Positions 47,572 through 63,968 of a stretch of DNA of 64,000 bases are shown here, one piece after another. The stretch's first letter is position 1. Each line of letters starts with the position of its first letter. Under the pieces are notes generated by a model, which was not told where the DNA came from, did not search any database, and saw only the letters and a list, made by a program, of their open reading frames with translations. Both the position numbers and the translations under genes were made by a program. Location of the stretch: IMG/VR virus record IMGVR_UViG_3300034104_005687, positions 285,370-349,369 of that record; one strand, given 5' to 3'.

Positions 47572-47646
47572 GGGGCTATAGCTTAATGGTAAAGCAGTGA
47601 ACTCATAATTCATTGAGTCTAGGTTCAATTCCTAGTGGCCCTACCA
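47572..47646 (+). tRNA. tRNA-Ile2/Met (CAT)
   Basis: Cloverleaf with CCA; promoter TTGACA-17-TACAAT at 47535-47563. Confidence 0.88.
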
Positions 47647-47652
47647 TTTTTA

Positions 47653-47727
47653 CTGGGGTTCGTATAATGGATAATACACGGGTCTTCTAAGCCCTTTATA
47701 GAGGTTCGATTCCTCTACCCCGGACCA
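47653..47727 (+). tRNA. tRNA-Arg (TCT)
   Basis: Cloverleaf, GGTTCGATTCC, CCA. Confidence 0.88.
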
Positions 47728-47734
47728 CATAGTC

Positions 47735-47783
47735 ATTGATGTTTTCTATGGTCATCATAAAAACAATTTCAGGCAAAAATTAT
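47735..47783 (+). promoter_or_regulatory. OxyR-like operator upstream of ahpC
   Basis: ATTG-N7-CTAT-N7-ATAA just upstream of TTGATT-17-TACACT. Confidence 0.45.
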
Positions 47784-47868
47784 GATTTTTCTTGATTTCA
47801 TTGCTATATACTATTACACTAAACACTCAGTACAAACACTGAGATACTTTTTAACCTAAGGAAATTTT

Positions 47869-48408
47869 ATGAAAACAGTTGGCGACAAAATTGAATCTTT
47901 TACCGTTACCGGTGTCAAACCAGGGCAACCCGATAATGCATTTTTTGACATCACAGCAACCAGCTTTCACGGCAAGTGGAAGGTTATTGTGTACTATCCC
48001 AAGGACTTTACATTTGTTTGTCCTACAGAAATCGTGGCATATGACAAGTTGGCTCAGGATTTCGAAGATCGTGACGCAGTGCTGCTCACAGGATCAACAG
48101 ACAATGAGTTCTGCAAAGTGGCATGGCAAACAGCTCACGCTGATTTGAAACAAATCAAGCACTACCAGTTTGCTGACACACAGCGCGGCGAGAATAGTTT
48201 GATCGAACAGTTGGGTGTGTTCTACGCTCCAGCAGGTGCCGCACTTCGCGCAACATTCATTGTTGACCCGGAAAACGTTATCCAACACGTAACTGTGAAC
48301 AATTTGAACGTTGGTCGTAGCCCCGAAGAAACATTGCGTATTCTTGACGCATTGCAAACTGGCGAACTGTGTGCCTGCAATCGCACCGTTGGTGGTGAGA
48401 CACTGTAA
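47869..48408 (+). CDS. ahpC: Peroxiredoxin AhpC
   Basis: YPKDFTFVCPTE, GR...E.LR, GELC. Confidence 0.95.
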   Translation: MKTVGDKIESFTVTGVKPGQPDNAFFDITATSFHGKWKVIVYYPKDFTFVCPTEIVAYDKLAQDFEDRDAVLLTGSTDNEFCKVAWQTAHADLKQIKHYQFADTQRGENSLIEQLGVFYAPAGAALRATFIVDPENVIQHVTVNNLNVGRSPEETLRILDALQTGELCACNRTVGGETL

Positions 48409-48584
48409 TGTTCAAGCTTCAACGAGGTATTGATACATTACGACAACCTGATCGCAATCCCAGATGTTATGAAATGACAGAACAGGAACGATCGGATCGC
48501 GTTCGTGAATGGAATAATCGCAATGTTTGGAACACTCCAGAACTTGCCGATGAAGATGAATTAAATTTCTACCAAGGAGCATGA
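48408..48584 (+). CDS. Small hypothetical protein (58 aa)
   Basis: Coupled at both ends (TAATG and ATGA). Confidence 0.55.
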   Translation: MFKLQRGIDTLRQPDRNPRCYEMTEQERSDRVREWNNRNVWNTPELADEDELNFYQGA

Positions 48585-49276
48585 CTATGTTAGAAACAAC
48601 TTATGAAAGCGGAACATCGTATCGTTCTGCCAGTGAAATCAACTCAGCAATGGGTCGTGTGTATGGACACATGAGTCTTGCTGTACTTGTATCAATGTTT
48701 GTGAGTTACTTTGTGGGCACCAGTCCAGAGTTGCTGGCATTCTTTTTTACAGGCTGGACGAAGTGGATTGTGATCTTTTCACCACTGGTGGCAATTTTTG
48801 GTGTTGCAATGGTACTAGCCAATAACCCAAGTAAAAGTGTAGCACAGTTATGCTTGCATGGCTTTGCGGCCTTGATGGGCTTGAGCTTTGCCACAATCTT
48901 TGCTGTGTTCACCATGGGCAGTATTGTGTCAGCATTCATGGGTGCGGCCATCCTGTTTGGTGTAATGAGTGTATATGGTTACTTTACCAAACAAAGTTTA
49001 GATAGTGTTGGTAAGTTTATGTTTGTGGGACTGATTGCTATCATCATTGCCAGCATTGTGAACATCTTTATTGGATCAACTGTGATGCAGATGGTGATTA
49101 GTGCTTTGGCAATTATTATCTTCCTTGGATTGACTGCTTATGACACACAAAAGATCCGTGAAGAACTCAGCATGGAAACCAGTGACAGCGCAGAAGTCCG
49201 TGGTGCATTGACACTATACATGGACTTCATTAACTTGTTTATTAACCTGTTACAACTGTTTGGTGATAGAAAATAA
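48581..49276 (+). CDS. Bax inhibitor-1/YccA family membrane protein
   Basis: About 7 hydrophobic segments, AYDTQKI, ALTLYMDFINLF. Confidence 0.92.
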   Translation: MTMLETTYESGTSYRSASEINSAMGRVYGHMSLAVLVSMFVSYFVGTSPELLAFFFTGWTKWIVIFSPLVAIFGVAMVLANNPSKSVAQLCLHGFAALMGLSFATIFAVFTMGSIVSAFMGAAILFGVMSVYGYFTKQSLDSVGKFMFVGLIAIIIASIVNIFIGSTVMQMVISALAIIIFLGLTAYDTQKIREELSMETSDSAEVRGALTLYMDFINLFINLLQLFGDRK

Positions 49277-49908
49277 TGAGTTATATTGTAGGATCGTTAC
49301 CGCCTGTCAAATGTTTTGTCAAACGAGAGTTTCTCTATAACTTTGAAAAGGGTCACGGAGAATTAGAACCTGCAATATGGGTCAGTCTCAAAGCCCTACG
49401 TGGACAAGTGTTTCGTATTGAATCATTACTGCCCAACTACGGAGCACTCTACGACAAACTACCTATTCATGCTTATGTGTGGCAAGAAGACTACTCGGGC
49501 AATTTGCCCGTAGATACACTACAGCTTTGGGACTGCATGGGTTATCGCTTTACTATCATTGAAAAAATAGGCCTGCGTAATCTAGGTGTTAAGTTTCTGG
49601 GCAAAGATCGGGAATGGCATCACGGAACCTATTTGTTTACAGTGGATTTTTGTGCTGACGGCATGGATGTAGACACAGGCTTTACTGAGGTCGCGGAAGA
49701 ACACAAATCGTTTAATTTTATTCGACTGGAAAACGGTCAGTTTGCCTGCCAACCCAACAATCGATGCTTGTGGTACGATCAAAGTTTGATTTCTGGCAAT
49801 GTTAAGTTTCCAGATTTCAAAGCCGCACAGACCATATTCACAGTGGATGGCACACGCAAGTGGTCAGCAGGAGATGATTGGTTTTATTCAATTGAGGAAA
49901 GAAAATGA
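49276..49908 (+). CDS. Hypothetical protein
   Basis: Coupled ORF. Confidence 0.75.
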   Translation: MSYIVGSLPPVKCFVKREFLYNFEKGHGELEPAIWVSLKALRGQVFRIESLLPNYGALYDKLPIHAYVWQEDYSGNLPVDTLQLWDCMGYRFTIIEKIGLRNLGVKFLGKDREWHHGTYLFTVDFCADGMDVDTGFTEVAEEHKSFNFIRLENGQFACQPNNRCLWYDQSLISGNVKFPDFKAAQTIFTVDGTRKWSAGDDWFYSIEERK

Positions 49909-50411
49909 GTTTTATTGAAACAGTAAAAGGCGCATTGCCAGACTATGCCAAAGACACCAAGTTGAATCTTGATGCTGTGCTACTGCGTAGTACTTTAGAT
50001 GCAGATGTGGCCCTGGGCTGTGCTGTGGCTGCACTGGCTGCAACTGGCAACGGAAAGGTACTGGCTGTGTTGTTGGCAGATGCTCCTGAGTTTGCCGACA
50101 GTGCAATGACAGCCGCAAGCATTATGGCTCAGAACAATACCTGGTATCCTTACATTGAAATGGCAGAAGATCCTGCATTAAAAGGGTTGCCGGCACAGTT
50201 GCGTATGAACGCTATTGCCAGCCACGGTGGCACAACCAAGGCCAACTTTGAAGCATTCAGTTTGGCAGCCAGCATTGTGGGCAAGTGCCATTTCTGTGTA
50301 AAAGCACACTATGACACCTTGAAGACAGAAGGCTACACAGTGGAACAACTTCGTGACATTGGACGTATTGCCAGTGTTATGAATGCCGTGGCCAAGGTTC
50401 TCAACAGCTGA
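49905..50411 (+). CDS. ahpD: Alkyl hydroperoxide reductase AhpD
   Basis: LPDYAKD.KLNL, CHFCVKAH. Confidence 0.92.
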   Translation: MSFIETVKGALPDYAKDTKLNLDAVLLRSTLDADVALGCAVAALAATGNGKVLAVLLADAPEFADSAMTAASIMAQNNTWYPYIEMAEDPALKGLPAQLRMNAIASHGGTTKANFEAFSLAASIVGKCHFCVKAHYDTLKTEGYTVEQLRDIGRIASVMNAVAKVLNS

Positions 50412-50487
50412 TCAAACAGGTTGACTGCTCTACTCAAAGTCCTGTATAATGTGCATACAGGACTTTTTTACGATGTAAATAAACAAC

Positions 50488-50571
50488 GCGACTGTGGTGG
50501 AATGGTATACACAGCAGACTTAAAATCTGCCGCCTACGGGATTGAGGGTTCAAGTCCCTCCAGTCGTACCA
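50488..50571 (+). tRNA. tRNA-Leu (TAA)
   Basis: Type II cloverleaf, CCA. Confidence 0.9.
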
Positions 50572-54889: not shown

Positions 54890-55798
54890 ATGAAAAAACT
54901 TTTAACTGCTGTGGTTCTGTCCATGGCCGCACTGAGTGCAAATGCCAAAGAAACCATTCAAATCATCTATGGGTTTGGAGCCGGTGACAACAGCACCAAC
55001 TATGCTCGCAACATGGCCGCAGAAGCCAACAAAATTCAAAACAAATACAATTTTGTGTTTGACGTCAAGTCCGGCGGCGGACAAGTCGTGGCCTTTAACT
55101 ATGTGAAAAATACGTCAGGTGCAATTTTTATGACATCGGGTGCATATTGGCTGCGACCCAATTTCTATCCCACAGCAAGTTATGATGTCAACGAATTTCG
55201 CACCATCATGACACAATGCAGTGTGCCGTTTGCTGTGGCATCCAAGAAGCATGCCAACTGGGCCAGTGTGCCCAAAAATCAGCCAATTACCATTGCCACC
55301 TCGGGGCTGGGAGTGGTCAGTCATTTGACAGCATTGCAAATTCAAAAGATATATCCCAACTCCACTATTGTGCCATACAAGAGCACTTCCGAAGCATTGG
55401 TTGCCACAATGTCAGGACAAGTTGATCTTGTAGTGGGTTTTGTAGGCGACATCGAAAAATACACACAAGAAGGATTTGCTGGAAAACTAACTACCTTGGG
55501 CACCACCGGTCCCAAGTTTGTGGGCAACTATCCTAACTTGACCAGTCAGGGATTCCCTGCACCGCTGGCCAAGATGAATACTCCCTACAACTTGATGGTG
55601 CCACGATCTTTTCCTGAAGACAAAGCCAAAGAAATTCGTGAAATCTTGTTGTCGGTGGAAAACAAAAAATCAGTACGTGATGCATATGCACTGGACCATT
55701 GCCAGCCTTTCCAAGTACCTGCAAAGGATCTTGGCACCTGGTGGAACGAGCAAAATCAATACTGGTCTGGTTTGACTGTTGGCGTCAAGATTGATTAA
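54890..55798 (+). CDS. Bug/TctC substrate-binding protein
   Basis: Signal peptide, VPYKS..SGQVD. Confidence 0.8.
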   Translation: MKKLLTAVVLSMAALSANAKETIQIIYGFGAGDNSTNYARNMAAEANKIQNKYNFVFDVKSGGGQVVAFNYVKNTSGAIFMTSGAYWLRPNFYPTASYDVNEFRTIMTQCSVPFAVASKKHANWASVPKNQPITIATSGLGVVSHLTALQIQKIYPNSTIVPYKSTSEALVATMSGQVDLVVGFVGDIEKYTQEGFAGKLTTLGTTGPKFVGNYPNLTSQGFPAPLAKMNTPYNLMVPRSFPEDKAKEIREILLSVENKKSVRDAYALDHCQPFQVPAKDLGTWWNEQNQYWSGLTVGVKID

Positions 55799-55808
55799 AT
55801 AAAAGTTA

Positions 55809-56176
55809 TTGCTGTATGAAGCAAAGAGAAAAGTGTCTTGGACGGGGGTGCGAATCCCCCCAGGTCCACCAATAAGGATGATTATGAACGTTACACAAAC
55901 ATTAAAAGTTACAGGCTATCTAGTAGGTGCATACATTGCTTACAAGTTAGGTCTTGAAGTGTGGTGTGTTGTTTATGGACTGCTTTATTGATGGGCCTGA
56001 CCTAGATTCGACAGGGCAACAAGTAAATTAGTGGACAGCTCGGCAATGTGAAAGCCGTTAGGGTTGGGAGAACTCGGCCGTAGAAGCAAAAAAAGTAACC
56101 GCAAACGACTCACAGTTCGCATTGGCAGCTTGAACAAGGCTACCTAGGGTAAGACATACCTCGTAACAGAAACTCC
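55809..56176 (+). ncRNA. ssrA: Circularly permuted two-piece tmRNA, tag ANDSQFALAA; outer ends approximate
   Basis: T-arm + CAGGTCCACCA (ends 55871) precedes GGGCCTGA..GATTCGAC (55993); G3-U70 pair; tag 56101-56133. Confidence 0.9.
55884..55991 (+). CDS. 35-aa hydrophobic ORF inside the tmRNA intervening segment
   Basis: AAGGA RBS; fills the spacer almost exactly. Confidence 0.45.
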   Translation: MNVTQTLKVTGYLVGAYIAYKLGLEVWCVVYGLLY

Positions 56177-56203
56177 AAAAAGGCGTCAAAATACGCCTTT
56201 TTT
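56177..56203 (+). terminator. Intrinsic terminator
   Basis: AAAAGGCGT..ACGCCTTTTTT. Confidence 0.8.
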
Positions 56204-56278: not shown

Positions 56279-57160
56279 ATGAAGAAAATTTTAGTTACAG
56301 CCGCTTTGTTGGCTACTTGTGCTCTGGCTTCTGCACAAACTACTGTGTACGGTCGGATGAACGCCACAGTTGACAACACCAAAACAGGTGCCAGCACTGT
56401 CAACAGCATCGCCAACGATATCAGCCACATTGGCTTTCGTGTACAAGAAAATATCGGCAAGGGCTTGACAGCTCGTGCTGTGATCGAAACTGGCATTAAC
56501 AGCCAAGATCCCACCGGTGGTACAGACACACAGCTGGGCAATCGCCACAGCACTGTGGGTCTTGTTGCCAAAGCAGGTAGCCTGGACCTAGGACGTAGAA
56601 CTCACGGCATCTTTACCACTGCTGCCGACAATGATTCTTTTGGCGCACTGTACGGCAGTATTGCTGGTGATGTACACAATCTACGTGGCAATCGACTCAG
56701 CAACGGCGTGTTTGCTCGTGTTACTGCTTTTCCCGGTGTAGCATTGGGTGCTGACCGTACTCATACTGCTGCCGGTCAAGAAGTCACTGTATACAGTGCC
56801 GGCGCCAAGTTTGGCATTGTCAACACCAGTGTTGCTCAATTTGATCAAGGTGCCGAAAAGAGCACAATGCTTGGCGCCAATGCCAAGTTTGGTGCAACCA
56901 CTGTGTTTTACAGCCACAGTGACAATCAAGGCGTTGTTGCCAACAAAGGCAACTTGGTTGGCGCTGCTCAAAAAGTAGGTGCTTACACCCTCAAGGCCAG
57001 CTATGGCAAGACCAACGCCGATGTTGAAGCCTACAATGTTGGTGCTGAGTATGCACTCAGCAAACGTACTGATCTCTTGGTCAGCTATCGCAACGTTGAC
57101 AAAACAGGTTCTGTCAACGACGTCAAACAGGTTGGCGTAGGCGTTACACATCGCTTCTGA
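56279..57160 (+). CDS. Gram-negative general porin
   Basis: Signal peptide, TVYG, GAEYALSKRT, terminal HRF. Confidence 0.9.
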   Translation: MKKILVTAALLATCALASAQTTVYGRMNATVDNTKTGASTVNSIANDISHIGFRVQENIGKGLTARAVIETGINSQDPTGGTDTQLGNRHSTVGLVAKAGSLDLGRRTHGIFTTAADNDSFGALYGSIAGDVHNLRGNRLSNGVFARVTAFPGVALGADRTHTAAGQEVTVYSAGAKFGIVNTSVAQFDQGAEKSTMLGANAKFGATTVFYSHSDNQGVVANKGNLVGAAQKVGAYTLKASYGKTNADVEAYNVGAEYALSKRTDLLVSYRNVDKTGSVNDVKQVGVGVTHRF

Positions 57161-57178: not shown

Positions 57179-57206
57179 AAAACCCGCCGAGGCGGGTTTT
57201 CTTTTT
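57179..57206 (+). terminator. Intrinsic terminator
   Basis: AAAACCCGCC-GA-GGCGGGTTTT. Confidence 0.85.
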
Positions 57207-57222
57207 GATTAAATTGTCGGGT

Positions 57223-57240
57223 CTGTAACAAAATTGTAAC
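57223..57240 (+). promoter_or_regulatory. Pho box
   Basis: CTGTAAC-AAAA-TTGTAAC, 11-bp period. Confidence 0.7.
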
Positions 57241-57261
57241 AGTCTTCGTCTTAAATAATAG

Positions 57262-58143
57262 ATGAAGACATATCGCTCAATCTTTGTCAGTGATGTCCAT
57301 CTTGGAACCAAAGATTGTCAAGCCGATCGTCTCAATAACTTTCTCAAACACAACACCTGTGACACACTGTATCTAGTAGGCGATATTATCGATGCCTGGA
57401 AGATACAACAAAACAAATGGCGCTGGAAACAAAGCCATACCAACGTGGTACGCAGAGTACTGGGTCATGCCAAGCGCGGAACCCGTGTAGTATTCATAGC
57501 AGGCAATCACGATGAATTCCTTAGGCCCATGATACCTTATGGTTTCAGTTTTGGTTTAATAGAAATACACAATCAAACGGAACACATAGGCGCAGATGGT
57601 AAGCACTACTTAGTTGTTCACGGTGACTTGTTTGACGGCATCACCCGCCTAGCACCATGGATAGCATTCTTAGGAGATAAAGCATATGATGTTGTTCTTG
57701 CACTCAACAATAAATTTAATTGGATTCGTCGTCGCATGGGTTTTGGGTACTTTAGCCTTAGCCGGTATCTTAAGTACAAAGTTAAAAAAGCAGTAGACTT
57801 TGTGTTCAAGTTTGAAGAGAATTTAGCCAACTACTGCAAAAAGCGTGGCTTTGATGGAGTCATCTGCGGACACATACATCACGCAGAAATAAAAGAAATC
57901 AACGGTGTCGCATACATGAATGATGGCGACTGGGTTGAATCGTGTACAGCACTTGTAGAACATCACGATGGCCGTTGGGAAATCGTAACTTGGACCAAGG
58001 AGAGCGACCATGTGGATACTGATAATACTGGCAGTGCATCTAAACAATCCAAAAGACATTCCAGGACGGGTAATGATAGAATTTCCTACCCTCCAGGACT
58101 GCGAGCGAGCTCGGTCAACAATGACCAGTTGGCTAAAATTTGA
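57262..58143 (+). CDS. plcP: PlcP-like metallophosphoesterase (LpxH-related phospholipase C)
   Basis: SDVHLG, LVGDIID, GNHD, HGD, GHIH, NDGDWVES; Pho box and downstream GT. Confidence 0.7.
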   Translation: MKTYRSIFVSDVHLGTKDCQADRLNNFLKHNTCDTLYLVGDIIDAWKIQQNKWRWKQSHTNVVRRVLGHAKRGTRVVFIAGNHDEFLRPMIPYGFSFGLIEIHNQTEHIGADGKHYLVVHGDLFDGITRLAPWIAFLGDKAYDVVLALNNKFNWIRRRMGFGYFSLSRYLKYKVKKAVDFVFKFEENLANYCKKRGFDGVICGHIHHAEIKEINGVAYMNDGDWVESCTALVEHHDGRWEIVTWTKESDHVDTDNTGSASKQSKRHSRTGNDRISYPPGLRASSVNNDQLAKI

Positions 58144-58183
58144 TAACTTCAAGGTGGTAGCAGAATGCAAGAAACAACTCTAA
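58010..58183 (+). CDS. 57-aa ORF overlapping the plcP tail
   Basis: AAGGAG RBS; MWILIILAVH... Confidence 0.5.
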   Translation: MWILIILAVHLNNPKDIPGRVMIEFPTLQDCERARSTMTSWLKFDNFKVVAECKKQL

Positions 58184-58884
58184 GCGACACAATTACCATA
58201 GTGGTACCCTGTAAGAATGAGGAGAACTATATTGCACATTTATTAATGCACCTACGCCAGCAGTCAATAGGTCGTACTAGAATTATCATTGCCGACTGTT
58301 CAACAGACCGCACTCGAGAAGTTATAGAAATAATGAAAGGTGAATTGAATGTTGAAATCATTGAGGGCGGGCCTGTTTCTACTGCCAAGAACCGTGGAGC
58401 ACAACTGGTCACCACTCCCTACATCTTGTTCGTTGACGCTGATGTACGTTTCTTCAAAGACACAGTCATCCGTGATGCTGTTGACCTAATAGAGTCTAAA
58501 AACCTAGATCTTATCGGCCTGAATATCAAATGCTATGACAAGGACCTACGAGCAAAGATTGGATTCACTGCATTTAATTTAATCAATCATGCATTAAAAT
58601 ACTTTTCGCCATTTGCTGTAGGAGCGTTCATGCTGACCCGCAGAGATCGTTTTGAAGAGTATGGCGGCTTTCCTGAACAATTTTCCACCAGCGAAGACTT
58701 CTTCTTGTCAAGAAAGTACAATCCTCGAAAGTTCAAAATTGTAAAACATTACTTTGGACAGGATAGTCGTAGATTTAAGAAGATGGGTTATTTTGGGATG
58801 GGCAAATACCTAATAAAGAACTTTGTTAATCGCAACAACCAGGCATATTGGAACCGTTTGGACGGATCCAAATACTGGTCATAA
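58165..58884 (+). CDS. GT2 glycosyltransferase
   Basis: VVPCKNE, STDRT, FVDAD, GGF..SED. Confidence 0.88.
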   Translation: MQETTLSDTITIVVPCKNEENYIAHLLMHLRQQSIGRTRIIIADCSTDRTREVIEIMKGELNVEIIEGGPVSTAKNRGAQLVTTPYILFVDADVRFFKDTVIRDAVDLIESKNLDLIGLNIKCYDKDLRAKIGFTAFNLINHALKYFSPFAVGAFMLTRRDRFEEYGGFPEQFSTSEDFFLSRKYNPRKFKIVKHYFGQDSRRFKKMGYFGMGKYLIKNFVNRNNQAYWNRLDGSKYWS

Positions 58885-58904
58885 TTTTGTAACAAAATTG
58901 TAAT
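58876..58904 (+). promoter_or_regulatory. Pho box with three half-sites
   Basis: TGGTCAT/TTGTAAC/TTGTAAT at 58876, 58887, 58898. Confidence 0.75.
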
Positions 58905-58946
58905 ATTATTCTACTTAAATAATTTTGTCACAACAAGGAGAACCCA

Positions 58947-59951
58947 GTGAACAAACTACTAGCAATTTTATTAGCCGCAGTAACGGTGTCAGCACAAGCT
59001 GCAGACATCACAGGCGCAGGCGCCACTTTCCCGTTCCCAATCTATGCCAAGTGGGCTGAAGCCTACAAGAAAGAAACAGGCATTGGGCTCAACTATCAAT
59101 CAATTGGATCATCGGGCGGCATTAGACAAATCAATTCCAGGACTGTGACGTTTGGCGCAACAGACGCACCTGTTAAGGGCGAAGATCTTGACAAGAATGG
59201 TCAAGTGCAGTTTCCGGCCATCATTGGTGGTACTGTGCCTATTGTTAACTTAGATGGTTTCAAGCCAGGCGAACTACGCATCACAGGACCTGTTATGGCT
59301 GAAGTGTTCATGGGCAACATCTCTAAATGGAATGACCCTAAACTAACAGCATTGAATCCAGGTAAGAATTTACCTAACGAACCAATCACAGTGGTTCACC
59401 GCGCTGATGGTTCAGGCACAACATTCAACTGGACTGACTATCTAAGCACAGTCAGCAAAGAGTTCAATGATAAAGTAGGAAAAGGTGCCGCAGTTAAATG
59501 GCCGGCTGCCACTTCAATTGGTGGCAAAGGCAATGAAGGTGTTGCTGCCAACGTCAACAGAGTTAAGGGCAGTATTGGTTATGTAGAGTATGCTTATGTT
59601 AAGAAAAACAACATGACGTTCCTACAACTACAAAACAAGTCAGGAAAGTATGTTAGCCCAGATGACTTAACATTTGCCGCAGCCGCAGATGGCGCCGATT
59701 GGTTCTCAGTACCTGGCATGGGATTAAGCATTGTTGATCAACGTAATCCTAATGCTTGGCCAGTGAGTTCAGCCAGTTTCATCATCATGTACAAGACTCC
59801 TGCTAACAAAGCCAATAGCGATGAAGTGTTAAAGTTCTTTGACTGGGCATTCAAGAACGGCAAGAAAGATGCTGTAGATTTAGACTACGTGCCATTGCCT
59901 GATGCTCTAACAAAGCAGATCCGTGAACGTGTTTGGACTCAGATCAAGTAA
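58947..59951 (+). CDS. pstS: Phosphate ABC transporter substrate-binding protein
   Basis: GAGATFP, YQSIGS, RADGSGTT, GYVEY. Confidence 0.97.
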   Translation: MNKLLAILLAAVTVSAQAADITGAGATFPFPIYAKWAEAYKKETGIGLNYQSIGSSGGIRQINSRTVTFGATDAPVKGEDLDKNGQVQFPAIIGGTVPIVNLDGFKPGELRITGPVMAEVFMGNISKWNDPKLTALNPGKNLPNEPITVVHRADGSGTTFNWTDYLSTVSKEFNDKVGKGAAVKWPAATSIGGKGNEGVAANVNRVKGSIGYVEYAYVKKNNMTFLQLQNKSGKYVSPDDLTFAAAADGADWFSVPGMGLSIVDQRNPNAWPVSSASFIIMYKTPANKANSDEVLKFFDWAFKNGKKDAVDLDYVPLPDALTKQIRERVWTQIK

Positions 59952-59997: not shown

Positions 59998-60023
59998 AAA
60001 AAGGCTACTTTGATAGCCTTTTT
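59998..60023 (+). terminator. Intrinsic terminator
   Basis: AAAAAGGCTA..TAGCCTTTTT. Confidence 0.8.
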
Positions 60024-60025
60024 CT

Positions 60026-60207
60026 TTGACTTTTTTGTTGCAGGCATATATAATGCACTATGATGACAGCAATCGCATTCACCGTGAAAAACATACCGGC
60101 CATTTGTGAGCAGGCCTATGAGCATGATTACCCGCGAGGTCTTTGTCGTTGTAGTTAACAAAAGTACTACATTCTGCAAAGACCCGCACACTAGGCGGGT
60201 TTTTTTA
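60026..60207 (+). promoter_or_regulatory. Attenuator-like unit 1: promoter, 32-aa leader ORF (60060-60158), antiterminator, terminator
   Basis: TTGACT-17-TATAAT; 60138-60146 pairs with 60176-60184, overlapping terminator 60181-60207. Confidence 0.6.
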
Positions 60208-60311
60208 TGGCGGTAGACACAATATTCACAATTTGCTACAATAGAAACAAGTTAGGAAATACAGCAAAGTTTGCAAAGACCCTACAAATTGAAGGGCTTT
60301 TGCAAAACAAG

Positions 60312-60393
60312 TTGACCAGTAAAACACAAGATGTTATACTAGAGACTAGTTAGGAAATAGTAGATCGAGACTGTTTTCAAAGTTCGTTAAAAA
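60312..60393 (+). promoter_or_regulatory. Sigma70 promoter and boxA-like element for tRNA array
   Basis: TTGACC-17-TATACT; GTTCGTTAAAAA at 60382. Confidence 0.55.
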
Positions 60394-60704: not shown

Positions 60705-60780
60705 GGTCTTAAAGTGTTCATGGACGCACGATGGCTTGTCACGCCATAAGAGTGGGGATCGTTACCCCCTAAGACCGCCA
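60705..60780 (+). tRNA. tRNA-Asp (GTC)
   Basis: Cloverleaf, atypical T loop, CCA. Confidence 0.82.
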
Positions 60781-60859
60781 AGTTTTGAGAGCCACATCGC
60801 CCTGATACTTCCCTCGGTAACGAGGCACTAGGTCTTGCAACCGTGGCTCTCCTCTTTTT

Positions 60860-60934
60860 GCTGGGTTCGTCTATCGGTTAGGACACAAGCCTTTCACGTT
60901 TGTAAGACGGGTTCGATTCCCGTACCCAGTACCA
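60860..60934 (+). tRNA. tRNA-Glu (TTC)
   Basis: Cloverleaf, CCA. Confidence 0.9.
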
Positions 60935-60938
60935 TTTT

Positions 60939-61024
60939 GGAGATGTAGGAAAATTGGTAACCCCAGTGGACTGTAAATCCGCCGCCTTACGGCACTACTG
61001 GTTCGACTCCAGTCGTCTCCACCA
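60939..61024 (+). tRNA. tRNA-Tyr (GTA)
   Basis: Type II cloverleaf, CCA. Confidence 0.9.
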
Positions 61025-61231
61025 ATGAACGTTCCGGGTGTCTCCGGATAGTGTGACCCACACGATGAGAAGTTGAGTGACATCAACGGGTGGTAGTCTT
61101 TGAACCCAAAGGCCGCTGGCAATGCGAGAACGGTCCCTGTCGGGAAGCGGGTGGAAGGTACGTGTGATGGGTACGATAGCGTCGTATCTTGATGTACTAC
61201 AATTACCGCCGGGGGATGCAGAGCATTTTTG

Positions 61232-61389
61232 TTTTTATAGTCAAGCATCGATACAGGTATCGTGACAGGACGCTGTCACTATTCGGGCCTAACTGTGCGA
61301 GGAACAGGTCCTGACATAACTGCTATTCGCTTGTCAGTGTTAGCTACATTGTTGACAAATCGGCATCTCTCGGTGCTTGACTATAAAAA
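61232..61389 (+). ncRNA. Stem-closed putative small RNA
   Basis: 20-bp closing stem 61232-61251 / 61370-61389. Confidence 0.5.
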
Positions 61390-61392
61390 TAT

Positions 61393-61470
61393 GTAGGGGT
61401 GGCAGAGTGGTCAAATGCAACGGATTGCAAATCCGTAAAGCCGTGAGTTCAAATCTCACTCCCTACTCCA
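61393..61470 (+). tRNA. tRNA-Cys (GCA)
   Basis: Cloverleaf, U73, CCA. Confidence 0.88.
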
Positions 61471-61557
61471 TTGATAAACACATTCACAGATCCGCCCTGT
61501 TACCTAGGGAGTCAGCGAGTAACCGCTTATGGACTGTTCAAGAGTGTGTTTTTCAAT

Positions 61558-61649
61558 GGGAGTGAGACTTGGTAGTCAGAGAGGTCTTATATACCTTTTA
61601 GCGCCAGATTAGCGTTCTTGAGAGAGTTCGATCCTCTCCACTCCTACCA
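61558..61649 (+). tRNA. Atypical tRNA with TAT anticodon and long variable arm
   Basis: GGGAGTG/CACTCCT acceptor, GAGGT-CTTATAT-ACCTT, T arm, CCA. Confidence 0.65.
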
Positions 61650-61659
61650 TAAATAATGG

Positions 61660-61735
61660 CGCAGTGTGTTAGAAGCGGTATCTGGCAAGGCTCATAACCT
61701 TGAGGTCGGGGGTTCGATTCCCTCCACTGCAACCA
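61660..61735 (+). tRNA. tRNA-fMet-like (CAT)
   Basis: C1xA72 mismatch, CCA. Confidence 0.82.
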
Positions 61736-61793
61736 ATTTGAGTCGTGTGATATAAATATCACACAAGAGCTTCTTGAGGTCAACCTCAAGAAG

Positions 61794-62004
61794 TAAATAA
61801 AGTACAATAGGACTTATGATGCAAACAATCATTCATTCACAGTTAAAATCCGCAATGTGCCCCCAGACACTGGTCTGGTCACGCGGCTTTACATCTGCGA
61901 ATAGTATTCCAGGGTCACCTGGGTCCTTTGAAGGCGAGAAGATTCTAAAAGTCTAACTCGCACAAATTCAAAAGGACCCCGGGACTAAAAACCCCGGGGT
62001 TTTT
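61794..62004 (+). promoter_or_regulatory. Attenuator-like unit 2: 46-aa leader ORF (61816-61956), antiterminator, terminator
   Basis: 61921-61932 pairs with 61967-61979, overlapping terminator 61976-62004. Confidence 0.6.
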
Positions 62005-62186
62005 CTTTTAGTGCAACGGCAACGCGAGCCGGCAACACTCTAAACTGCAAATGGGCGGCCTGTAGGATGGAGCACTTCTTCTAGTGTGAAAAATTACAGC
62101 GTATTAAAGCATTCTTTAAGAACAGGCAGCCTAAGTATTTTAGAGTGCTTTAATACACACATTCCTAAGAGTGTGTTTGAAAATTT

Positions 62187-62261
62187 GGGCTGATAGTGAT
62201 AATGGGAGCACAGTGGCTTTGCAAGCCTCGGGTCGGGGTTCGATCCCCCGTCGGTCCACCA
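62187..62261 (+). tRNA. tRNA-Ala (TGC)
   Basis: G3-U70, CCA. Confidence 0.9.
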
Positions 62262-62266
62262 AATAG

Positions 62267-62340
62267 GTATCCATAGTGTAATGGCAGCATCGCGGTCTCC
62301 AAAACCGTCAGTCTAGGTTCGAGTCCTAGTGGGTACGCCA
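62267..62340 (+). tRNA. tRNA-Trp (CCA)
   Basis: Cloverleaf, CCA. Confidence 0.9.
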
Positions 62341-62348
62341 AGTTTTGT

Positions 62349-62422
62349 TCGGGTATAGTGTAATGGTAACACCACAGACTTTGACTCTGTTATTCTAGGT
62401 TCGAGCCCTAGTACCCGTGCCA
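62349..62422 (+). tRNA. tRNA-Gln (TTG)
   Basis: Cloverleaf, CCA. Confidence 0.9.
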
Positions 62423-62430
62423 GTTTCGTT

Positions 62431-62504
62431 GCTCGGTTAGTTAAATGGTATAACGGACGCTTGATAAGCGTTTATTACAAGTTCAATTCTTGTACTGAGC
62501 ACCA
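62431..62504 (+). tRNA. tRNA-Ile (GAT)
   Basis: Cloverleaf, CCA. Confidence 0.9.
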
Positions 62505-62549
62505 ATTTTTGTAGGCGGTCACAGAGCCGTCTATAAGTAAAAAGTTCAT

Positions 62550-62639
62550 GGTGCGGTCCTATAATGGTATTAGAGCGGATTGCTAATCCGTCGCTCGGTG
62601 AAAGCCGGGTTCTGAGTTCGAGTCTCAGTCGCACCGCCA
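62550..62639 (+). tRNA. tRNA-Ser (GCT)
   Basis: Type II cloverleaf, CCA. Confidence 0.9.
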
Positions 62640-62645
62640 GAATAT

Positions 62646-62721
62646 TCCCCAGTAGCACAGCGGTAGTTGCACTTGACTGTTAATCAAGGTGTCCGTGGTT
62701 CGATCCCACGCTGGGGAGCCA
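62646..62721 (+). tRNA. tRNA-Asn (GTT)
   Basis: Cloverleaf, CCA. Confidence 0.9.
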
Positions 62722-62726
62722 AGTTT

Positions 62727-62800
62727 GCCCTATTAGTATAATGGTATTACACCTGTTTTGTAATCAGGTTACGGCAGTTCGATTCTGTCATGGGGCACCA
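62727..62800 (+). tRNA. tRNA-Thr (TGT)
   Basis: Cloverleaf, CCA. Confidence 0.9.
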
Positions 62801-62807
62801 AAACAAC

Positions 62808-62881
62808 GCGGGATTAGTTTAATGGTCAAACGAAACCTTGCCAAGGTTTAGTCAGGAGTTCGATTCTCCTATCCCGCTCCA
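62808..62881 (+). tRNA. tRNA-Gly (GCC)
   Basis: Cloverleaf, CCA. Confidence 0.9.
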
Positions 62882-62885
62882 TCTT

Positions 62886-62959
62886 GCTCCTATAGTATAA
62901 TGGTAATACACGCCCTTGGTAAGGGCGAGCCGCAAGTTCAATTCTCGCTAGGAGCACCA
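62886..62959 (+). tRNA. tRNA-Thr (GGT)
   Basis: Cloverleaf, CCA. Confidence 0.88.
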
Positions 62960-63014
62960 TTTACAAGTCTACACTCTCCCTTGACGAGCTAGGTCCCTGG
63001 ACTTTTGTTTCACT

Positions 63015-63092
63015 GCGTCTCTAGTTCAACTGGATAGAACACCGGCCTACGAAGCCGTGAGGTTGGGGATTCGAATTCCTCGGGACGCACCA
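63015..63092 (+). tRNA. tRNA-Arg (ACG)
   Basis: Cloverleaf, CCA. Confidence 0.85.
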
Positions 63093-63100
63093 AACAGCAG

Positions 63101-63129
63101 TTGACAACATTCTGTGATTGTTGTATAAT
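63101..63129 (+). promoter_or_regulatory. Consensus sigma70 promoter inside tRNA array
   Basis: TTGACA-17-TATAAT. Confidence 0.85.
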
Positions 63130-63239
63130 AATATTTTTGACACAAAGAGGTAATGACATGAAACGAGGTAAACTCTAGTGTCATCCTAGACCCCGTATGG
63201 TCCTGGATGGCACGATAAAGACAATTCTTTACGATCCAT

Positions 63240-63314
63240 CCCTTCGAGATGTTATGGTAGCATAGCGGACTCTTAATCCGACAAGCGTCAGTTCGACTCT
63301 GACCGGAGGGACCA
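63240..63314 (+). tRNA. tRNA-Lys (CTT)
   Basis: Cloverleaf with A8, CCA. Confidence 0.8.
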
Positions 63315-63317
63315 TAT

Positions 63318-63392
63318 GGGGGTATAACTTAACGGCTAAAGTAGTAGGCTTTTAACCTATTAATCAGAGTTCGATTCTCTGTGCCCCTACCA
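63318..63392 (+). tRNA. tRNA-Lys (TTT)
   Basis: Cloverleaf, CCA. Confidence 0.9.
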
Positions 63393-63474
63393 TATAAAAA
63401 CACATTACAAGCGGTATCGCTTTTCGGCAAAGCCCGTGCCAAAGTAGTCAGTCTAGGATAGTGTGTTTCTATAT

Positions 63475-63549
63475 GGTGTCCATAGTTTAGTGGTAAAACC
63501 GCGGGTTGTGATTCCGCTATCACGAGTTCGATTCTCGTTGGATACCCCA
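63475..63549 (+). tRNA. tRNA-His (GTG)
   Basis: G-1:C73, CCA. Confidence 0.9.
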
Positions 63550-63559
63550 AAATATTTTG

Positions 63560-63634
63560 GGTTGTATGACATAGACGGATGTGTACCGGCTTCATAAGCC
63601 GAGGAGGTTGGATCGATACCAACTACAACCACCA
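63560..63634 (+). tRNA. tRNA-Met (CAT)
   Basis: Cloverleaf, CCA. Confidence 0.82.
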
Positions 63635-63635
63635 A

Positions 63636-63710
63636 GGGCCTTTAGTTCAACGGATAGAATGCCATGCTTCGAACTTGGCGATGTGGGTTCGATTCCTGCA
63701 GGGCCCGCCA
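63636..63710 (+). tRNA. tRNA-Arg (TCG)
   Basis: Cloverleaf, CCA. Confidence 0.88.
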
Positions 63711-63711
63711 G

Positions 63712-63882
63712 TTAGATGTTTTCGATAAAATTCAATGCGTCTTCCATGTTGGTAAAATATCGCATGGTCAGGCGTTCGTTGTAAATATCGTTGACAAAGA
63801 TGTAGCACACAGATGCATCGTGGTTGACGGATAGGTGTATATGAGCCCATCCGTTGGCAGCAAAGAAGTCACGTTGTTGCAT
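63712..63882 (-). CDS. 56-aa hypothetical protein antisense between two tRNAs
   Basis: Minus-strand TAAATA at 63887-63892, 4 nt before ATG; fills the spacer exactly. Confidence 0.55.
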   Translation of the reverse strand: MQQRDFFAANGWAHIHLSVNHDASVCYIFVNDIYNERLTMRYFTNMEDALNFIENI

Positions 63883-63894
63883 CAAGTATTTATT

Positions 63895-63968
63895 GCGGGG
63901 TTCGTATAGTGGTAATACCTTAGCCTTCCAAGCTAAAGCGAGGGGTTCGATTCCCCTACCCCGCTCCA
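63895..63968 (+). tRNA. tRNA-Gly (TCC)
   Basis: Cloverleaf, CCA. Confidence 0.92.

Follow-up and report, generated by a model that had tools for sequence, protein, structure and literature searches.

A predicted phosphate-stress lipid-remodelling gene cassette in a freshwater jumbo phage

A 349-kb freshwater jumbo phage genome (IMG/VR record IMGVR_UViG_3300034104_005687) carries, behind two host-type promoters with Pho-box-like (phosphate-starvation) repeats, genes for a PlcP-type metallophosphoesterase (MPE) predicted to be a phospholipase C, a glycosyltransferase of a mostly viral GT2 family, and the phosphate-binding protein PstS. From this arrangement we infer that the phage probably strips phosphate from the host membrane and boosts phosphate uptake when the host is starved. 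The analysis began from a 64,000-nt window (positions 285,370 to 349,369 of the record), in which a sequence-only reading had noted 11-bp-period Pho boxes before the MPE gene and before pstS, with a GT2 gene between them and a TAAATA hexamer after each box. That observation was confirmed. The interpretation attached to it, which was that phage PlcP and a partner glycosyltransferase remodel host lipids to release membrane phosphate for DNA synthesis under hybrid PhoB/late control, was supported only in part, as described below. Literature searches for phage or viral plcP found no paper that describes one. Virome surveys list such genes as "lpxH" under LPS biosynthesis.

Organization and promoters of the cassette

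All features lie on the plus strand and are bracketed by intrinsic terminators, one at 57179-57200 after the upstream porin gene (9-bp stem, 5 GC pairs, T run) and one at 59998-60023 after pstS. The first direct repeat (TGTAAC-N5-TGTAAC, 57224-57240) sits where a -35 element would be, and is followed after exactly 11 nt by TAAATA (57252-57257), which is 4 nt before the ATG of the MPE gene (57262-58143, 293 aa). There is no Shine-Dalgarno sequence there, so the mRNA is probably leaderless. The GT2 gene (58165-58884, 239 aa) has its own Shine-Dalgarno sequence (AAGGTGG, 58151-58157) and starts 21 nt after the MPE stop codon, which fits co-transcription. The second repeat (TGTAAC-N5-TGTAAT, 58888-58904) is again followed after 11 nt by TAAATA (58916-58921), and then by a 25-nt leader with the Shine-Dalgarno sequence AAGGAG (58935-58940) and pstS (58947-59951, 334 aa, GTG start). 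Two direct repeats with an 11-bp period, replacing the -35 element about 10-11 nt upstream of a -10 element, are the architecture expected of a Pho box, although the half-site TGTAAC differs from the textbook TGTCAT. Neighbouring genes have ordinary TTGACA-17/18-TATAAT-type promoters instead.

The composite element TGTAAC-N5-TGTAAY-N11-TAAATA was found twice in the window and in 0 of 100 shuffles, and twice in the whole 349,369-bp genome and in 0 of 20 Markov simulations. It therefore occurs only before the two phosphate-related transcription units, out of about 368 genes. The bare repeat pattern alone is weaker evidence, with 2 observed against 0.35 expected and 8 of 100 shuffles reaching 2. 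The hexamer TAAATA was found upstream of 69 of 367 genes against 4 expected, a 17-fold enrichment, and precedes baseplate, sheath, fibre and portal genes, indicating that it is the structural-gene (late) promoter motif of this phage. A hybrid PhoB/late promoter, as the sequence-only reading suggested, is thus reasonable at the level of sequence.

It is possible that the repeats are not PhoB sites but an operator for a phage-encoded regulator, or simply a duplicated phage promoter module, in which case expression would follow the late program regardless of phosphate. The two copies share an identical 16-mer that occurs exactly twice genome-wide, as a duplication would give, TAAATA alone precedes the MPE gene in some related phages that lack any repeat, and Pho boxes predicted in phages have failed experimental tests before (PMC10976474). 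We consider this alternative unlikely, because before the MPE and pstS genes of diverged related phages the half-sites and the 11 + 11 spacing are kept while the intervening letters differ, and some copies read TGTCAC or TGTCAT. In addition, the pstS genes of the bacteria with the closest PstS are preceded by TGTCAY/TGTAAY repeats of the same period, including TGTAAT-N5-TGTAAC, and a Methylotenera pstS shows TGTCAT-N5-TGTCAT-N10-TAGAAT. The region upstream of a Methylotenera MPE gene lies within coding sequence and was uninformative.

The phosphoesterase groups with PlcP-type proteins and not with LpxH

The MPE matched Pfam Metallophos (42.9 bits), and its metal-binding motifs (DxH, GD, GNHD, HGD, GHxH) are intact, with D11, H13, D41, N82, H83, H120, H204 and H206 invariant across phage and bacterial homologues. 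Against the curated LpxH equivalog models it scored well below cut-off (46.4 bits against 134 for NF003743 and 35.1 against 190 for TIGR01854). Five bacterial genomes each hold a true LpxH at 280-333 bits, and four of them (G001, G003, G004 and G005, of which G004 is a Methylotenera genome) also give a weak second hit of 27-54 bits, which is the PlcP-like locus. In a maximum likelihood tree a branch with 100% SH-aLRT support splits LpxH from all 7 phage MPEs and 80 bacterial PlcP-like proteins, 21 of which are encoded directly upstream of a GT4 Agt-like gene. The tree left out the experimentally characterised PlcPs (SMc00171, MED193_17359, PB7211_983, PA3219 and BCAL2364), so the PlcP clade in it is defined by operon context only. 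Grouping with LpxH had been named beforehand as part of what would count against the PlcP reading, and it was not observed.

A blastn search of the region against 50,697 phage records gave no match, and only protein-level relatives were found there, at 49% identity in Pelagibacter phage Mosig and 35% in S-SRM01. Bacterial proteins of the PlcP type are 50-58% identical. The predicted structure has low confidence in the cap region (pLDDT below 50 at residues 129-181), and residues from about 251 to 293 form a disordered tail. In fold searches the 23 best distinct PDB entries (ranks 1-25) are all LpxH, at E about 1e-11, with the next classes at about 1e-7. A DNA-repair or nuclease-type phosphoesterase was rejected, as LpxH outranks Mre11/PolD-type folds by about four orders of E-value and the bacterial relatives are PlcP-type proteins.

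The glycosyltransferase belongs to a mostly viral GT2 family

The sequence-only reading presented the glycosyltransferase as a PlcP partner of the kind that builds phosphorus-free glycolipids, but it is not a homologue of Agt, the glycosyltransferase partner of characterised PlcPs, which is GT4 with a GT-B architecture (Glyco_transf_4 plus Glycos_transf_1). The phage protein matched PF00535 (69.5 bits), has a D91-x-D93 motif that is invariant in its family and a conserved basic/aromatic C-terminal motif, and its AF2 model (pLDDT 92) matches GT-A enzymes. It belongs to a mostly viral family of about 240 residues. No Agt homologue was found in the phage genome, where this is the only PF00535 gene, and none of the 80 bacterial plcP loci has this GT2 nearby, so an acceptor cannot be transferred from Agt by orthology. 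Its best NCBIfam hit, TIGR04283, scored 64 bits against a cut-off of 182, and no named glycolipid or carrier-lipid synthase family (MgdA-like, GtrB/ArnC/DPMS-like) matched above cut-off. There is no hydrophobic segment (maximum KD19 of 1.1), unlike the carrier-lipid enzymes of the GtrB/ArnC type, which have C-terminal transmembrane helices. Sequence and fold searches against solved structures returned only generic GT-A enzymes (TarS/TarP, AvpGT, PcManGT, chondroitin and hyaluronan synthases) and no acceptor assignment, and the source names of its relatives are uninformative ("glycosyltransferase involved in cell wall biosynthesis").

The two genes are tightly linked in viruses. Of 80 viral loci with the GT2, the MPE gene is immediately upstream in 68, immediately downstream in 3 and about 1 kb away in 3, and pstS lies within 4 kb in 16. 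The pair also occurs in distant phages whose GT2 is only 43-45% identical. Four viral loci have the GT2 without an adjacent MPE, one of them inside a ribonucleotide reductase cluster, while Mosig, in which the MPE gene is divergent from pstS, and S-SRM01 carry the MPE without this GT2. Bacterial relatives of the GT2 sit next to an LpxL-like acyltransferase, a sphingomyelinase-like phosphodiesterase, or a VTT/DedA membrane protein, contexts that suggest a lipid acceptor.

It could be that the PlcP assignment is right but that the GT2 is not its chemical partner, the phospholipase releasing phosphate or weakening the membrane, possibly aiding lysis, while the GT2 glycosylates a carrier lipid, a small molecule or a protein and the genes travel together only as a mobile accessory island. 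The loci that hold one gene without the other, and fold matches that include teichoic-acid, oligosaccharide and polysaccharide enzymes, leave room for this. We think it improbable, however, since the linkage survives divergence down to 43% identity and even an inversion of gene order, the genes are separated by 21 nt here or overlap elsewhere, which suggests co-translation, every known PlcP operon pairs it with an enzyme that consumes diacylglycerol (PMC4796936), and the sphingomyelinase-like phosphodiesterase occupies the same position before a bacterial GT2 relative.

A further possibility is modification of the envelope, with the MPE acting like LpxH on a lipid A precursor or another pyrophosphate-linked lipid and the GT2 decorating LPS core, lipid A or a polyprenyl-phosphate carrier, so as to change the cell surface, for example to exclude superinfecting phages, rather than to save phosphorus. 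LpxH is the only solved structural neighbour of the MPE, databases as well as viromes annotate such genes as lpxH, one bacterial GT2 relative follows the LpxL-like lipid A acyltransferase, and others pair with VTT/DedA proteins, which are linked to lipid-carrier flipping. Phage GT2 enzymes also alter O-antigen. This explanation seems unlikely given the separation from LpxH, the grouping with proteins that head plcP-agt operons, the absence of transmembrane helices in the GT2, and the promoters, pstS linkage and host-type synteny, which point to phosphate economy.

PstS and its bacterial counterparts

The PstS protein scored above the cut-offs of two equivalog models (NF008171, 392.9 against 339; TIGR00975, 367.6 against 205) and has an N-terminal hydrophobic signal segment, consistent with a periplasmic phosphate-binding protein. 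In the bacterial genomes with the closest PstS (79 and 76% identity) the locus order is PGM, plcP-like, (GT4 Agt-like), OlsB-like, pstS, pstC, an order that the phage cluster mirrors. The PstS relatives, a beta-type tmRNA, the porin and a TctC-like gene suggest no more than a Betaproteobacteria-like host.

A proposed model for phosphate acquisition from host membranes

We propose, with moderate confidence, that this is an auxiliary cassette for phosphate stress. In a phosphate-starved betaproteobacterial host, phosphorylated PhoB would bind the two repeats and switch on two promoters whose -10-like element is also the structural-gene promoter motif of the phage, so that the genes would be made late in any case, and earlier or more strongly under starvation. 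The PlcP-type phospholipase C would cleave the phosphorylated head group from membrane glycerophospholipids, yielding diacylglycerol and a soluble phospho-alcohol whose phosphate could feed nucleotide synthesis for a 349-kb genome. The co-transcribed peripheral GT2 would glycosylate the diacylglycerol, or another membrane-lipid acceptor. Because GT2 enzymes invert configuration the product should be a beta-linked phosphorus-free glycolipid, which would keep the bilayer intact until lysis. Extra PstS from the second promoter would raise phosphate capture. What the analysis itself establishes are the gene identities at family level, the split from LpxH, the uniqueness and conservation of the promoter architecture, the linkage of MPE and GT2 in phages, and the synteny with host-type plcP-agt-olsB-pstS loci, whereas the enzyme activities, the donor and acceptor of the GT2, PhoB binding with phosphate-dependent transcription, and the benefit to the phage are inferred. 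The building of phosphorus-free glycolipids and the mining of membrane phosphate for DNA synthesis, both part of the sequence-only reading, rest on gene linkage and analogy.

Where a phage gets phosphorus for its DNA in phosphate-poor water is an open question, for which the known viral answers are uptake genes (pstS, phoA) and host DNA breakdown. A phage-borne PlcP-type phospholipase with its own glycosyltransferase would add the host membrane as a phosphorus store, tapped on the host's own starvation signal. By a rough estimate, the membrane phospholipid of a small cell holds phosphorus for a few 349-kb genomes, which is substantial for a jumbo phage with a small burst. The finding also offers a new, compact GT2 family that may be a glycolipid synthase, a correction to the routine "lpxH" annotation of viral genes, and a clean natural example of a promoter that joins a host activator site to a phage late element. 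A bolder and more tentative reading, which we regard as possible but somewhat less likely than not, is that PlcP and this viral GT2 form a phage-specific two-enzyme lipid-renovation cassette, widespread in freshwater and marine phages (more than 500 IMG/VR contigs), that converts host phospholipids into a beta-linked glycosyl-diacylglycerol the host itself does not make, under direct control of the host's PhoB. If so, many viral auxiliary genes listed as lpxH in virome surveys are misnamed PlcP genes, and viral infection would be a distinct driver of the phospholipid-to-glycolipid shift, and of phosphorus recycling, in phosphate-poor waters.

Comparison with known systems

T4-type late promoters (TATAAATA at -10, no -35) resemble the phage motif in that a short A/T-rich -10-like element without a -35 element precedes structural genes, but the core here is TAAATA, in 24 genes it lies only 4-7 nt from the start codon, and in two cases it is combined with a Pho-box-like activator site. 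LpxH (UDP-2,3-diacylglucosamine diphosphatase) shares the superfamily and fold of the MPE, with a helical cap inserted in the metallophosphoesterase core, but the phage protein falls below the equivalog cut-off in a separate, fully supported clade, and bacteria carry both paralogues. Cyanophage pstS and phoA are under control of the host PhoBR system (Zeng & Chisholm 2012, as cited in PMC10976474; S-PM2d study, PMC10976474), a precedent for a phage-borne pstS that responds to host phosphate status through Pho boxes in phage promoters. The host group (Betaproteobacteria-like) and the box sequence differ here, and the cassette adds a predicted membrane-lipid branch (PlcP plus GT2) that is not described for cyanophages in the papers we found.

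The host-type plcP-agt-olsB-pstSCA loci of two bacterial genomes (G028 and G301, with the same order as G004) share with the phage the order of a PlcP-like gene, one or more lipid-synthesis genes and then pstS, with direct-repeat Pho-box-like sites before plcP and before pstS, and encode PstS proteins that are 76-79% identical and MPEs that are 50-54% identical to those of the phage. The host locus uses GT4 Agt and/or an OlsB-like acyltransferase and continues into pstC and pstA, while the phage keeps only pstS and uses its own GT2. In the bacterial PlcP-Agt lipid renovation pathway (Sinorhizobium SMc00171; Phaeobacter MED193_17359; SAR11 PB7211_983/960; P. aeruginosa PA3219/PA3218; B. cenocepacia BCAL2364-2366), which is under Pho control, a PlcP-type metallophosphoesterase is likewise followed in the same operon by a glycosyltransferase, with a Pho box upstream and linkage to phosphate-starvation genes (PMC4796936; PMC8528852; PMC13691135). 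The cassette described here differs in being encoded by a phage, in having an inverting GT2 with a GT-A fold from a mostly viral family in place of the retaining GT4 Agt with a GT-B fold, in lacking dagK, btaAB and olsB, and in carrying the late-type TAAATA element of the phage in its promoters.

Genomic setting

The cassette is carried by a single 349,369-bp virus record that is rated 97% complete, within the 64 kb at its end. The genome has a GC content of 45.7%, and a simple ORF call predicted about 368 genes, among which baseplate wedge, tail sheath, tail fibre and portal genes were recognisable, identifying it as a tailed jumbo phage. Also found in the window were 24 tRNA genes, located at 47572-50571 and 60705-63968 (+), 21 of them in one array directly downstream of the cassette, where the array is preceded by three sigma-70-like promoters at 60026-60054, 60214-60242 and 60312-60340. 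A permuted, Betaproteobacteria-type tmRNA (55759-56203, +; Rfam tmRNA_permuted 112 bits, beta_tmRNA 91.6 bits), for which ARAGORN predicted the tag peptide ANDSQFALAA, lies between genes for a TctC/Bug-type periplasmic binding protein (54890-55798, +) and a short, 293-residue Gram-negative porin (56279-57160, +), and hints at a betaproteobacterial host. Together with pstS, the TctC-like and porin genes form an island of host envelope and uptake genes. Related jumbo phages carry superoxide dismutase, peroxiredoxin, a CMD-domain protein and NifU/Fe-S assembly genes around the same cassette (related phage contigs L006, 7652-9837 and 10727-11737, and L010, 1452-4170), suggesting a larger stress-response AMG island.

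Promoter architecture

The sequence-only reading had described Pho boxes of 11-bp period before a metallophosphoesterase (MPE) gene and before pstS, with a GT2 glycosyltransferase gene between them, and this observation holds. The MPE gene is at 57262-58143, the GT2 gene at 58165-58884 and pstS at 58947-59951. TGTAAC-N5-TGTAAC (57224-57240) precedes the MPE gene and TGTAAC-N5-TGTAAT (58888-58904) precedes pstS, and each repeat is followed after exactly 11 nt by TAAATA. The composite pattern matched twice in the window and in none of 100 shuffles, and twice in the whole genome and in none of 20 Markov simulations, and the shared 16-mer occurs only at these two places. The repeat pattern without TAAATA was not significant on its own (2 observed, 0.35 expected, with 8 of 100 shuffles reaching 2). 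Terminators at 57179-57200 and 59998-60023 bracket the unit, and none was found between the GT2 gene and pstS. The neighbouring TctC-like and porin genes have ordinary, near-consensus sigma-70 promoters, TTGACA-17-TATAAT and TTGACT-18-TATACT, respectively, but the two promoters of the cassette lack a -35 element and carry the repeats in its place.

This architecture is conserved in related phage contigs, where flanks and spacers differ but the half-sites (TGTAAY or TGTCAY), the 11-bp period and the 11-nt distance to TAAATA recur, before the MPE gene in L006, L010, L115, L134, L162, L168, L169, L173, L180 and L183, and before pstS in L010, L168, L169, L173, L180, L181 and L183. The background rate of the repeat pattern in these loci is about 0.005 per 90 nt. 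In a few loci the distance is lengthened by about one helical turn (21-22 nt), while others have TAAATA alone or a different conserved element. One subgroup of related phages lacks the TGTAAY repeats; upstream of the MPE gene (L133, L135, L145, L149, L150, L156, L167 and L170) it has a different conserved element, an inverted repeat GGTCAC-N8-10-GTGAC, followed by CTGGA-N-CCGTAACCAGA, and upstream of pstS (L135, L149, L156, L170 and L172) it has TGTGAC-N5-CGTTAC, which may be a Pho box of another host group or a different regulator site.

The repeats resemble host Pho boxes. A search of 401 genomes of the order that holds a Methylotenera genome revealed a distinct group with PstS at 68-79% identity to the phage protein, the rest reaching at most 62%. 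The pstS genes of that group are preceded by direct repeats of the same period, for example TGTCAT-N5-TGTCAC and, in locus L218, TGTAAT-N5-TGTAAC, and the Methylotenera pstS has TGTCAT-N5-TGTCAT-N10-TAGAAT. PhoB binding is inferred from sequence alone, and a cyanophage study warns that predicted phage Pho boxes often fail in gel shifts (PMC10976474), so a rival possibility is that the repeats serve a phage regulator rather than PhoB.

TAAATA was the most enriched hexamer upstream of genes, present before 69 of 367 genes against 4 expected, with no conserved -35 partner. It precedes baseplate wedge, tail sheath, tail fibre, portal and virion protein genes, indicating that it is the structural-gene promoter motif, and at the level of motifs this supports the earlier suggestion of a hybrid of PhoB and late control. 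The gap between TAAATA and the start codon is bimodal across the genome (e.g. C1:81697, 142354 and 287163; window 57252-57264). In 24 genes, including portal and other virion genes and the MPE gene, the motif ends only 4-7 nt before the start codon and there is no Shine-Dalgarno sequence, suggesting leaderless late mRNAs, while a second group has a gap of 16-20 nt; pstS has a 25-nt leader with AAGGAG.

The metallophosphoesterase is PlcP-type, not LpxH

The MPE scored 46 bits on the LpxH equivalog model, whose cut-off is 134. Five bacterial genomes each have a true LpxH at 280-333 bits, and four of them also gave a weak second hit of 27-54 bits, which is their PlcP-like gene. In a maximum-likelihood tree of 93 proteins, comprising E. 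coli LpxH, five other LpxH proteins, 80 bacterial relatives and 7 phage proteins, but not the characterised PlcPs themselves, LpxH split from everything else with 100% SH-aLRT on a long branch, and all phage proteins lay on the other side. The tree came from a quick search, with long branches for several phage sequences. On the side of the phage proteins, 21 of the 80 bacterial genes are followed directly by a GT4 Agt-like gene, which is the canonical plcP-agt arrangement (PMC4796936), and the clade of the window's protein is sister to a Methylotenera protein (SH-aLRT 90). Bacterial relatives are 46-58% identical by best aligned segment, and the metal ligands are invariant. In the AF2 model the core is confident and the helical insert is weak; its 23 best distinct PDB entries (ranks 1-25) are all LpxH, at E about 1e-11, against about 1e-7 for Mre11- or PolD-type enzymes. 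Grouping with LpxH had been named beforehand as part of what would refute the lipid-remodelling reading, and it was not observed. Envelope or LPS modification is a rival explanation for the cassette.

A GT2 family linked to PlcP-like genes in phages

The glycosyltransferase is a new partner and is not related to Agt, as it is a GT2 with a GT-A fold (by structural model), whereas Agt is GT4 with a GT-B fold. It belongs to a sharply defined family of 235-245 residues with an invariant DxD motif and a conserved basic/aromatic C-terminal motif, the nearest clusters being mostly viral. The protein has no transmembrane segment and is basic overall. At least 514 IMG/VR contigs encode relatives. Among the best 80 loci (55 distinct genes), the PlcP-like gene is immediately upstream in 68, immediately downstream in 3, about 1 kb away in 3 and absent in 4, with two loci too short upstream to tell. 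The pair recurs, with overlapping genes, in unrelated phage contexts where the GT2 is only 43-45% identical.

None of the bacterial plcP loci examined has this GT2, and its bacterial relatives are rare, found in 5 of 401 Pseudomonadota genomes. In each of these five (loci L235-L239; 135-141 bits) the gene is followed on the same strand by a membrane protein with VTT/DedA and LssY_C domains, a conserved pair. Elsewhere the gene follows an LpxL-like acyltransferase or a sphingomyelinase-like phosphodiesterase; the latter, an EEP phosphodiesterase, lies directly upstream of a GT2 family member (42% identity over the matched stretch) in the bacterial-looking contig L221 (3046-4726), and may be a non-homologous replacement of the PlcP step. 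These contexts point to a membrane-lipid acceptor but do not identify it, and it is also possible that a real PlcP is accompanied here by an unrelated GT2.

Proposed mechanism

The interpretation of the cassette as phage-driven lipid remodelling, in which PlcP removes phospholipid head groups and a partner glycosyltransferase builds phosphorus-free glycolipids, is partly supported. In the mechanism we propose, host PhoB would activate both promoters under starvation, the PlcP-type enzyme would remove phosphorylated head groups from phospholipids, and the GT2 would cap the resulting diacylglycerol with a sugar, for which a beta linkage is predicted, as GT2 enzymes use an inverting mechanism. 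Extra PstS would raise phosphate capture, and the late-type TAAATA element would secure expression late in infection even without starvation. The gene identities at family level, the separation from LpxH, the conserved promoter architecture and the gene linkage are shown by the sequence analysis, but the enzyme activities, the GT2 acceptor, PhoB binding and expression are inferred. We hold the proposal as a whole with moderate confidence, which is higher for membership in PlcP and lower for the acceptor of the GT2.

Comparison with known systems

PlcP-Agt has been described in bacteria, and PhoB-controlled pstS in cyanophages, but our literature searches found no paper describing a phage plcP or this GT2. 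Virome surveys list 'lpxH' as an LPS-biosynthesis AMG, in one case among the commonest such genes at surface and subsurface depths of oligotrophic water (PMC10653327, PMC9611531), and it is possible that such entries are PlcP-type genes.

Pelagibacter phage Mosig independently places its PlcP-like gene back to back with pstS. The 150-nt region between these divergent genes (L001, 4851-5000) holds five TTAAC repeats, four of which read TTAACA, including TTAACA-N5-TTAACA with an 11-bp period, and a TAAATA just before the MPE start, making it a candidate shared regulatory region.

The cluster also mirrors a host-type locus. In the bacterial genome G028 (PstS 79% identical; locus L233, C1:469000-477000) the order is phosphoglucomutase-family gene, PlcP-like (50% identical), GT4 Agt-like, OlsB-like acyltransferase, pstS, pstC, and in genome G301 (PstS 76% identical; locus L234, C3:24500-31500) the order is the same without the GT4. 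Such bacterial loci, which join PlcP-like, GT4 Agt-like and OlsB-like (ornithine-lipid) genes directly to pstSCA, put glycolipid synthesis, aminolipid synthesis and phosphate uptake in one cluster, and repeat elements precede both plcP and pstS there. The phage arrangement (box, plcP, GT2, box, pstS) is thus a reduced copy of a bacterial phosphate-stress locus, with the lipid-synthesis step replaced by the phage's own enzyme, whose lipid acceptor is inferred.
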